A stretch of DNA of 64,000 bases from Macrostomum lignano (taxonomy: Eukaryota), in NCBI GenBank assembly GCA_002269645.1, contig NIVC01003103.1, forward strand, positions 124,001 through 188,000. The letters run 5' to 3'. The notes beneath the pieces are model-generated. The model made no database searches, was not told the DNA's origin, and saw nothing but the letters and a program-made list of their open reading frames with translations. Made by a program: the position numbers and the translations under genes. Every line of letters starts with the position of its first letter. Position 1 is the first letter of the stretch. Below, piece by piece: positions 27,501 through 30,500 of the stretch.

Positions 27501-30500
27501 GCAGTTTGGTGGCCGGGGGCGGTTCACCGGCAGTTTGGTGGCTGGGGCATAATGAGGCAAAACGGGTAGCTGCTCAAAGTTTTCCTATTTTTTCGCCATT
27601 CTCTTGGCCGCAGTCGCCGCCGCTGGGGAGGCGCGGGGAGCTGCGCGGTAGGGGAGTCGCCCCAGCTCCTCAGCGGTGATTGAATAAATCCCGCGGCACA
27701 AACCGGGTTAGCACCTCGGCGGCTAAAATCCAATTCAGAACACTCCGCCCTCCTCCCTCCCGCTTCCCCAAATGTTGGCTCGGCTCCGAGGACCCAGATC
27801 CCAGATCCCAGATCCCAAGAATCCCTCTAAAGCCCCGCAGTTGGAGCAGAAAATTGAGCAGAAAGCCCGGGCTCTTCGCTCCACTCTCTCTCTCTCTCTC
27901 TCTCTCTCTTTCTGGTGCTTCTCCTTTTTCTGCCCAGGCGGACACGCGCGCCCAACTGATTAAAGCCCCGGTAGCCCCGCGCCGCGCCTCCCTGCCGCGC
28001 ACTCATGGAGATTCCACTGGCGGCCCCCCCGCCCGCCAGCCCGGCCGGACAGCTGAGCAACGGGTGGACGCGCGGCCGGTCGGAAGCGACAGGGGGGCGG
28101 CACAAAAGACCGGCGCTGGCGGACACCGCGGCGGCACGCAACGGCGGCAAGCAAGGCAGCAAGGCCTCCCCTTCGATCCACCGGCGCTACCGCCCTCCCA
28201 GCTTGGCAAATCTGCAGCTTTGTTGCCATGCGGCCTCTCCCCCCGCCCCGATCGCAAGTCCTCAAGCACTTGACAGCTGGGATTTTTTAAATTTTGTTTT
28301 ACAAAAATAGGATTAAAACTAAACGGTAGGAGAAGCTCGCGGCCAGATGAAGGATGGGAGACCCCTGCCGCAGCTTCTTTCAGCAACGAGGACACCCGGG
28401 CTGGATGAGGGAGAGGGGAAGTTCGAACTTGTGGCGAAAATTTCTGCATGCGCAGAGAAAAGCTGAAAGCAGCAAGCATTGGAGCTGCGGCAGGGCGGTC
28501 CCGTATGGGACAAGAAAGTCGAGGCTGTCGCCCCCCCCCTTTAAGACCCCGAAGGAGGAAAAAATCCCCGCTTTTGTACTTGCGCTGCCTGCCCGCCCGC
28601 CCGCCTGTTGCCAGCTGCTGCTGCCGCCGCACCTCGGATTTCTGCCGAGCTCCGCCTCCCCCCTTCCTCGGGGCGGCGTGTTGGGCTGTAAAACAAAGCC
28701 TGGCTAATAGCGACAGAGGGGGGCAGAGCGGGCAAGGCGGCAGCGGGGGACCCGGGGGTCAAGTGCTGTGCAGCGGAGATGCCAGGCAGCGAACACAGAA
28801 ATGCCCTGACCGCCAGCGGCCCGGTAGGACATGCAGAGTCGTAAAACGATTAGCGTGTTTCCTAGAAAGCGAGGGGCGGCGGCAAAACAGGGACTACCGC
28901 TAGGGGACTGGGATGATTTTATCGAGAACGTAAACCCGATCCTTGCGGCGCGGCCGTGCACTCTTGGGCTGTCAGAAATAAATTTATCAACTATAGCTGC
29001 CGTCAGACTGGTGGCGCCTGGCTGACGGAGAGATGGCATCTGAGCGAAGGAGAGATGGCGCCTGACAGACGGAGAGATGGCATCTGAGCGAAGGAGAGAT
29101 GGCGCCTGACAGACGGAGAGATGGCGCCTGACTGACGGAGAGATGGCATCTGAGCGAAGGAGAGATGGCGCCTGACAGACGGAGAGATGGCGCCTGACAG
29201 ACGGAGAGATGGCGCCTGACTGACGGAGAGATGGCATCTGAGCGAAGGAGAGATGGCGCCTGACAGACGGAGAGATGGCGCCTGACAGACGGAGAGATGG
29301 CACCTGACTGACGGAGAGATGGCATCTGAGCGAAGGAGAGATGGCGCCTGACAGACGGAGAGATGGCGCCCGACAGACGGAGAGATGGCGCCTGACAGAC
29401 GGAGAGATGGCATCTGAGCGAAGGAGAGATGGCGCCTGACTGACGGAGAGATGGCATCTGAGCGAAGGAGAGATGGCGCCTGACAGACGGAGAGATGGCG
29501 CCCGACAGACGGAGAGATGGCGCCTGACAGACGGAGAGATGGCATCTGAGCGAAGGAGAGATGGCGCCTGACAGACGGAGAGATGGCATCTGAGCGAAGG
29601 AGAGATGGCGCCTGACTGACGGAGAGATGGCATCTGAGCGAAGGAGAGATGGCGCCTGACTGAAAGAGAGATGGCGCCTGACTGACGGAGAGATGGCATT
29701 TGAGCGAAGGAGAGATGGCGCCTGACTGACGGAGAGATGGCATCTGAGCGAAGGAGAGATGGCGCCTGACTGAAGGAGAGGTGGCGCCTGACTGACATTT
29801 CCGCCGAAAATGTAGTAAAGTTTCAGTTTGGCCAGACGCAGGGCTTAGCACGGACTCACCCAGCTGCCAGGCAGTTTGCACCAGCAGAGCCAGCAGCGAG
29901 AGCCTCAGGACCTGCCTGAGCATAGCGGGGCGGCAACTCCAGCTGTCTGCGACCGTCTCTGCGAACCCCGGGGGTCGAGCGTTGATTCTAGCAGGGGCAG
30001 GCGAGCTTGGAGAGAAATCCCACTTTGGGAAGAGAGTTGAATAGGCAAAGGAGACGCTTTAAAACAGCCTATGAGCTGGGCGACATGCCACCACTGACTG
30101 GGCATCCGTGTGTGTGGCTTTGGCCAATTGCCTTGCAGCCAATGGGGAGCCGCACTCACCCTGCTGCAGGCTGACTATCTATCTATCTATCTATCTATCT
30201 ATCTATCTATCTATCTATCTATCTATCTATCTATCTATCTATCTATCTATCTATCTATCTATCTATCTATCTATCTATCTATCTATCTAACTAACTATCT
30301 ATCTATCTATCTATCTATCTATCTATCTATCTATCTATCTATCTATCTATCTATCTATCTATCTATCTATCTATCTATCTATCTATCTATCTATCTATCT
30401 ATCTATCTATCTATCTATCTATCTATCTATCTATCTATCTATCTATCTATCTATCTATCTATCTATCTATCTATCTATCTATCTATCTATCTATCTATCT

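Follow-up and report, generated by a model that had tools for sequence, protein, structure and literature searches.

A candidate signal-peptide exon within an alpha-neurexin intron of Macrostomum lignano predicts an isoform that begins at LNS2

The window analyzed here, a 64,000-nucleotide (nt) stretch of the Macrostomum lignano genome (GCA_002269645.1, contig NIVC01003103.1; record position = window position + 124000), contains between 42.2 and 6.2 kb a minus-strand gene that, judged by its sequence, is a true alpha-neurexin, and within the first intron of this gene lies a 64-nt candidate alternative first coding exon, called the mini-exon below. Unless another strand is given, features are located by their window position on the minus strand, and a slash within a sequence marks a splice or domain junction. 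Pfam matches to Laminin_G_1/2 and EGF on the exon translations recover six laminin-G and three EGF domains in the canonical LNS-EGF-LNS order, and alignment to bovine NRXN1-alpha (3QCW/3R05) is colinear, including the LNS1-EGF1-LNS2 portion. The C-terminal region matches Syndecan (PF01034, E = 6.8e-6) and comprises a single transmembrane segment, a syndecan-type tail, and a C-terminal PDZ-binding motif, ending KEWYV. After the M. lignano self-match, the next 16 named relatives in a protein search were all neurexin 1 or neurexin 3 (E 1e-112 to 1e-81), with CASPR-type proteins scoring far below them. The locus of the best protein match (L001) shows 100% identity to window positions 33047-1. A second, homeologous copy of the gene (copy B; locus L002, NIVC01001883.1, model PAA62984) was retrieved via a protein cluster, and LNS2 to LNS6 were mapped on the window locus by tblastn of PAA62984.

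The boundaries around intron 1 define what an alternative first exon at this locus could encode (Table 1). Exon 1 is colinear with NRXN1-alpha residues 10-241 and has a G+C content at third codon positions (GC3) of 0.84. Exon 2 begins at the acceptor ccccacAG/AGAAGG, which is common to exon 1 and the candidate mini-exon, opens with AG AAG GAC GAA GTG CCG ACA ACC TTC AAC GGC, and aligns to bovine NRXN1-alpha from residue 230 (EEYIATFKG). Because the joined product of exons 1 and 2 follows bovine NRXN1-alpha column for column, intron 1 is the counterpart of mammalian SS1 and exon 2 starts at LNS2. The N-terminus of the PDB chain 3POY_A, a 1,019-residue LNS2-LNS6 fragment, falls within ~2 residues of the exon 2 start as judged from alignment offsets, which is consistent with a protein beginning at LNS2 being a foldable unit. 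The deposited models of the two copies, PAA53330 for the window and PAA62984 for copy B, both start in the intron just upstream of exon 4; the first 20 residues of each are translated intron (window 22987-23047; L002 10001), and both models are 5'-incomplete transcript fragments.

The mini-exon opens with an ATG at 29923-29921 and continues for 21 codons in total before a single G at 29860, the strand reading gccccgctATG CTC AGG CAG GTC CTG AGG CTC TCG CTG CTG GCT CTG CTG GTG CAA ACT GCC TGG CAG CTG G/GTGAGTCC. Joining it in silico to exon 2 creates a GAG codon (G + AG), the donor and acceptor phases being compatible. The simple heuristics that we applied describe a plausible signal peptide, with a charge of +2, a mean Kyte-Doolittle hydropathy of 3.0 over LSLLALLV, and either V-Q-T or Q-T-A ahead of the cleavage point; the predicted n-region is MLRQVLR and the predicted h-region LSLLALLV, and by rule of thumb cleavage would likely fall after T17 (VQT/A) or A18 (QTA/W). 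The initial annotation of this stretch had described a 64-nt unit with a phase-1 GTGAGT donor 2.7 kb upstream of exon 2, and we find this correct to the base; the in-frame join to exon 2 also reads as it stated. Its further suggestions, of a second signal-peptide exon and of a product that would begin at LNS2, agree with the heuristics above and with the placement of the exon 2 start at the LNS2 N-terminus in the NRXN1-alpha alignment.

TABLE 1 Positions of the features discussed, in window coordinates
Feature	Position	Strand	Details
Canonical exon 1	42158-41375	-	Signal peptide, LNS1, and EGF1; ATG 42158, ends C 41375; donor AGAC/GTGAGT, phase 1
Intron 1	41374-27118	-	14.3 kb
Candidate upstream donor	30160-30154	-	GGTGAGT (CAGG/GTGAGT); GTGAGC in homeolog; 7 GGTGAGT sites on the same window strand
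Two inverted CCAAT boxes	30143-30124	-	ATTGGC at 30143 and 30128; ~205-220 nt upstream of ATG; promoter-like, putative function
Zero-difference block versus homeolog copy B	30081-29852	-	230 bp; TTTAAA, putative 5' untranslated region, ATG, all codons, donor to +8
TTTAAA, TATA-like	30063-30058	-	Putative function
Polypyrimidine tract and AG	30044-30022	-	ctattcaactctcttcccaaAG/T at 30023/30022; fraction 0.75; putative trans-splice acceptor
Candidate alternative first coding exon (mini-exon)	29923-29860	-	ATG, open frame, and 1 nt; 64 nt, phase 1
Mini-exon donor GTGAGTCC	29859-29852	-	G/GTGAGT, phase 1; 8.6 bits by position weight matrix
Intron from mini-exon to exon 2	29859-27118	-	2,742 nt, much tandem repeat
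Exon 2 (start of LNS2)	27117-26965	-	153 nt, phase 1 in and out
Exon 3 (LNS2)	25228-25053	-	
Exon 4 (LNS2)	22987-22829	-	
Remaining exons	20141-6184	-	LNS2 end, LNS3-EGF2, LNS4, LNS5, EGF3, LNS6, stalk, transmembrane segment, tail KEWYV; by tblastn of PAA62984 and Pfam
Acyl/acetyl-CoA synthetase-like open reading frame	51235-49121	-	Intron-less, 705 codons (AMP-binding, ACAS_N)
Dynein light chain type 1 exon	61701-61285	-	
EF-hand exon	62206-61931	-	
Phosphatidylinositol transfer protein gene	1-1824	+	Runs off window start; neighbor common to paralogous neurexin loci

How often such a unit would arise fortuitously was gauged with a scan that required an ATG with an open frame of 14-45 codons, a donor whose score on a generic position weight matrix reached 8 bits or more, and a signal-peptide-like N-terminus. 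An N-terminus qualified if eight consecutive residues free of charge averaged 2.5 or higher in Kyte-Doolittle hydropathy and the n-region had a positive net charge. On both strands of the window (128 kb) the mini-exon was the sole match, and with relaxed thresholds it was still clearly the best. Two 6-Mb order-3 Markov sequences were simulated, one modeled on intron 1 and the other on the whole window; with all phases counted they contained 0.002-0.014 units of this kind per 14.3-kb intron, and with phase 1 alone no more than 0.0024. A chance origin of the mini-exon is unlikely. Its base composition is also that of an exon, with a GC3 of 0.86 in frame versus 0.75 and 0.35 in the other two frames, within the 0.84-0.93 range of the real exons, which show the same frame periodicity. 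A 21-codon scan of GC3 against G+C at second positions (GC2), which mostly marks known exons, flags only 29861-29923 and two other segments in intron 1, although the measure in part tracks leucine content, so that this line of evidence is not fully independent. The two other exon-like segments lie at 31585-31647 and 32911-32982 (minus strand), the second being flagged on both strands. The same scan found no coding-like segment between 29860 and 27117.

Comparison with the homeolog shows that the ATG, open reading frame (ORF), donor, and phase of the mini-exon are all intact in copy B. The two copies are identical across the 230-bp block listed in Table 1, whose 3' edge falls exactly at donor position +8, while the flanks have diverged by 5-8%, with 5 substitutions over 96 bp on the upstream side and 6 over ~70 bp on the downstream side. 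At the background divergence of 1.35%, the probability of 0 substitutions in 230 bp is ~0.045. The identity of the island between the two copies is consistent with constraint on the mini-exon, without being decisive. The window as a whole is 37% tandem repeat (TRF, 88 arrays), minisatellites flank several of the exons, and the differences between the two gene copies are mostly indels inside tandem arrays.

The strongest support for the mini-exon, though indirect, comes from a second M. lignano neurexin, PAA86589.1 (P0025, BOX15_Mlig002077g3), which was found by a full HMMER search with the signal peptide plus LNS2 and LNS3 and is 45% identical. Its N-terminus reads MRRRAASEIAAAALLLCASVAAVTN/LREETPTTFDGRGFIYLD, in which a signal peptide is joined straight to LNS2, the LNS2 side after MRRRAASEIAAAALLLCASVAAVTN opening with LREETPTTFDG. 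The first exon of this model (locus L004, 10001-10076) runs from the ATG to a C and comprises 25 codons plus 1 nt before the donor AATC/GTGAGT in phase 1, and the LNS2 exon lies 6.5 kb downstream with the acceptor cag/TTCGCGAGGAG. In the other copy of this paralog (locus L005), the model PAA54791.1 joins the EGF1 exon (GAAAATC/GTGAGA) to the same LNS2 exon, and there the signal-peptide exon sits in a 17-kb EGF1-LNS2 intron, 4.5 kb upstream of LNS2; between the two copies this exon differs by one synonymous change. The Mlig_3_7 annotation is a genome-guided transcriptome built with StringTie, TACO, TBONE, and TransDecoder (PMC5730564), so the 5' structures of PAA86589.1 and PAA54791.1 are derived from transcriptome sequencing (RNA-seq) rather than ab initio prediction. 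The window gene and the paralog share a common layout, in which exon 1 is followed after 11-13 kb by a signal-peptide exon between tandem repeats and after a further 2.7-6.5 kb by the LNS2 exon, all in phase 1, and three neurexin loci have the same downstream neighbor, an IP_trans gene on the opposite strand. The LNS2-start architecture put forward in the initial annotation has a counterpart here, an equivalent exon being used in the paralog's transcript-derived models (PAA86589.1 versus PAA54791.1). A further M. lignano neurexin-like LNS2 sequence (P0180/P0056; UniRef A0A1I8H049 and A0A1I8GWM6), which reads KHEFPTTFNGLGFIYLNVSS, is ~50% identical, and these sequences indicate at least three neurexin paralog families in M. 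lignano.

A comparable architecture appears in an RNA-seq contig from another organism. The Logan contig SRR17902662_19585 (P0042; 4,236 nt) encodes a complete 1,295-residue neurexin that is ~32-33% identical to its nearest neurexins and reads MQCLVVTAALFGSWWTLAFVGFLVVPTSCS/EKVPIVSAFTG...REWYV, with the signal peptide again leading straight into LNS2. A stop codon lies four codons ahead of its ATG, and the boundary (...TCA G/AG AAG...) is in phase 1. LNS2-start models from Antedon, Trichuris, Owenia, Auanema, and Exocentrus were not counted, being truncated or devoid of a signal peptide.

Taken with the composition, the chance estimate, and the paralog, these sequence features make it probable in our judgment that the 64-nt unit is a genuine alternative first coding exon of the M. 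lignano alpha-neurexin, placed in the EGF1-LNS2 (SS1) intron. For the window gene itself we infer the expression of a mini-exon isoform, the cleavage of its signal peptide, and the origin of its 5' end. A broader proposal is that a fourth class of bilaterian neurexin, a five-LNS "LNS2-start" form, is made by the Macrostomum neurexin genes and in one or more further animal lineages, that its exon predates the duplication of the M. lignano paralogs, and that its 5' end might be trans-spliced; we put this forward tentatively and with more doubt than confidence.

Several observations weigh against the mini-exon as a genuine exon. Its predicted c-region is short, and for cleavage after A18 position -3 would be Q. 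Unique sequence diverges by only 1.35% between the two gene copies, with exons (1.33%) showing no more conservation than introns, and the introns too contain uninterrupted identical stretches of 223 bp or longer; with divergence this low and intron runs this long the conservation test is weak, and we have downgraded that line of evidence. In the collections searched, exons 1-3 and the mini-exon are absent from every protein, the models of both copies starting at exon 4. A word-indexed protein search with the mini-exon signal peptide joined to exons 2-4 gave no match; the same index also missed PAA53330, which shares 53 identical exon 4 residues and was found with a full-length query, so that negatives from such short overlaps are weak. 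Exact look-ups of the exon 1 ORF and of the ORF reading through the mini-exon returned no record. Homology between the signal-peptide islands of the window gene and the paralog was not detected (Smith-Waterman score 17 versus a shuffle mean of 18), which leaves common descent of the exon plausible but unproven, and in the contig from the other organism the boundary tgctcag/AGAAGG is itself acceptor-like, so that a retained intron is possible in principle. Finally, one nucleotide is missing from the EGF3 exon in the window copy relative to copy B (8976-8978, minus strand); barring a mistake in the assembly, every isoform would be cut short.

The low divergence with its long perfect intron runs, the lack of a match to the window gene's mini-exon in the searched protein collections, and the post hoc selection of the unit by the initial annotation all speak for a reading in which the unit is a chance or relic product, that is, a fortuitous or decayed ORF and donor in intron 1 that never enters mature mRNA, with the identity of the copies reflecting low divergence. 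We regard this as unlikely, given the low simulated rate in phase 1, the status of the unit as sole match in the scan, its exon-like composition, and the presence of the same architecture in the paralog's transcript-derived model.

The EGF3 deletion bears on another possibility, which is that the unit is the real 5' exon of some other transcript (nested, non-coding, or continuing into an exon within 29.86-27.12 kb that escaped detection), or that the window copy is a pseudogene and the exon is functional only in copy B. The deletion affects a run of C, which reads GTGCGGCCGAGG in the window and GTGCGGCCCGAGG in the homeolog; PAA53330 is out of frame from this point onward, while PAA62984 is intact. 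The change may have made the copy a pseudogene or may be a homopolymer artifact in the PacBio-derived assembly, and the 2.7-kb interval between the mini-exon and exon 2 does include well-conserved stretches, with perfect homeolog runs at 28417-28195 and 27903-27723. We nevertheless consider this family of explanations quite improbable, since the C homopolymer is a place where the assembly may err, the interval from 29860 to 27117 lacks coding-like segments in our scan, the phase of the unit fits exon 2, and the paralog's equivalent exon is joined directly to its LNS2 exon. As a separate observation, two stretches in the intron between LNS3-EGF2 and LNS4, 18753-18006 (748 bp) and 17871-17397 (475 bp), are identical between the copies and longer than any exon match, and could reflect gene conversion, a conserved element, or a nested transcript.

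If the mini-exon is a genuine first exon, we hypothesize that it supplies an initiator ATG and a predicted cleavable signal peptide and that its phase-1 GTGAGT donor uses the same exon 2 acceptor as exon 1. The product would be a membrane-anchored neurexin of ~1,330 residues with LNS2-LNS6, two EGF domains, the stalk, the transmembrane segment, and the PDZ-binding tail, but without LNS1 and EGF1. This would apply the principle of beta-neurexin, in which an intron-embedded signal-peptide exon leads into a shared LNS exon, one module from the N-terminus. The 5' end of such a transcript might arise from its own promoter, two CCAAT boxes and a TTTAAA being present upstream, or from spliced-leader trans-splicing at 30023/30022.

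The sequence around the mini-exon offers candidate signals for either route. The mini-exon forms the 3' end of a ~310-bp unique island, which is bordered upstream by (GATA)n repeats spanning 1.1 kb (30170-31270) and downstream by a minisatellite (~29800-28700), and a ~30-nt repeat (by eye) occupies ~27550-27130, just ahead of exon 2. A TTCAACT motif (~30037-30031) lies ~28 nt downstream of the TATA-like element, and no ATG intervenes between that element and the mini-exon ATG at 29923; the ATGs at 30105 and 30086 are both located 5' of TTTAAA, and the former is AGG in the other gene copy. The additional CAGG/GTGAGT donor that had been noticed near 30158, and suggested there as a possible mark of a 5' untranslated exon, is present (GGTGAGT at 30160-30154). 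The best acceptor-like site upstream of the mini-exon ATG is ctattcaactctcttcccaaAG/T. A 35-nt spliced leader is added to ~30% of M. lignano genes (PMC8629364), so the 5' end of the short isoform could arise at an internal promoter, as the initial annotation proposed, or through trans-splicing of alpha pre-mRNA, and the addition of a spliced leader at this intron 1 acceptor is a serious alternative, a route equally open as an internal promoter.

The same stretch of sequence bears on whether part of the island could instead be an internal cassette or poison exon between exons 1 and 2, an analogue of SS1. Its position does correspond to mammalian SS1, the frame is open upstream to 30058, and in-frame acceptor AGs occur at 29958 and 29946. 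These in-frame AGs lack polypyrimidine tracts, whereas the good acceptor at 30022 would define a 163-nt exon, one nucleotide more than a multiple of 3 and hence out of frame as a cassette. An included segment would moreover bring hydrophobic, Leu-rich sequence into a linker outside the cell. The paralog's acceptor AGs nearest upstream of the ATG are out of frame by our own count, so that its signal-peptide exon is not an in-frame cassette, and an in-frame TAG stands four codons upstream of the PAA86589.1 ATG. We therefore judge a cassette or poison exon very improbable and rejected it as the principal explanation, the only in-frame acceptors being weak.

To our knowledge, LNS1-EGF1 is the least understood part of alpha-neurexin. 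An LNS2-start form of the kind predicted here would, if real, be a natural isoform that lacks only LNS1-EGF1 while keeping the ligand sites of LNS2 and LNS6 and the intracellular tail, and would provide a genetic handle on the role of LNS1-EGF1. It would also mean that N-terminal truncation through intron-embedded signal-peptide exons arose at more than one LNS boundary. Were the 5' end to be trans-spliced, isoforms would be generated without a second promoter, a new route to N-terminally truncated adhesion proteins. Because M. lignano is tractable for transgenesis and has public RNA-seq, spliced-leader read, and RAMPAGE data, the prediction is cheap to test.

The remaining genes recognized in the window are listed at the foot of Table 1. 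In addition, exon-like ORFs at 54520-53066 (minus strand) resemble SNAP-25/SNARE by eye and lie inside a tandem-repeat family, and no Pfam match was found for them at E <= 0.001.

Bilaterian neurexins are described in alpha, beta, and gamma forms, of which only alpha and gamma are reported from invertebrates (PMC12665717; bioRxiv 10.1101/2025.08.29.672776). We found no description of an LNS2-start isoform in the neurexin literature that we searched, nor anything there on a Macrostomum neurexin, and likewise no paper that mentions PAA86589.1 or SRR17902662_19585. An NRXN1 "alpha2" isoform was considered as a possible precedent and dropped as an unconfirmed lead; in the one paper found to use the term, it labels a full-length NRXN1 reference sequence in an alignment, and an internal start is not mentioned.

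A close parallel in mechanism is beta-neurexin of vertebrate NRXN1-3, which has an intron-embedded first exon with its own ATG and signal peptide, as predicted for the mini-exon, in frame with a shared exon at an LNS boundary, and carries a transmembrane segment and tail as in alpha (PMC12665717). Beta-neurexin starts at LNS6 with a beta-specific peptide, whereas the form predicted here would start at LNS2 and have almost no isoform-specific mature sequence; because it starts at LNS2, the predicted product is not a beta-neurexin, though it would work like one. In the window gene, the intron ahead of the LNS6 exon, where a beta exon would sit (8859-8513, ~347 nt), contains no signal-peptide-like ORF and consists of tandem repeats of ~22-23 nt (by eye), in line with its earlier description as short and mostly repeat. 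Gamma-neurexin, as in mammalian Nrxn1-gamma and the short form of C. elegans nrx-1, is similar in being a short form of the alpha gene that is initiated internally, and it is the only short form described in invertebrates (PMC12665717; bioRxiv 10.1101/2025.08.29.672776); it starts in the stalk region and lacks all LNS and EGF domains, whereas the predicted isoform would keep five LNS and two EGF domains. Cnidarians and placozoans have separate delta and epsilon genes as well as alpha-like genes whose LNS domains number four or five (Guzman et al. 2024, PMC11294457). These four- and five-LNS neurexins resemble the predicted form in having fewer than six LNS domains, but they are separate non-bilaterian genes rather than the products of alternative 5' exons of a six-LNS gene. 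The paralog PAA86589.1 and the contig SRR17902662_19585 share with the predicted isoform a signal peptide followed directly by LNS2 and differ from it in their signal-peptide sequences, and the recombinant bovine neurexin-1-alpha LNS2-LNS6 fragment (3POY) begins within ~2 residues of the same point by alignment offsets, although it is an engineered construct.

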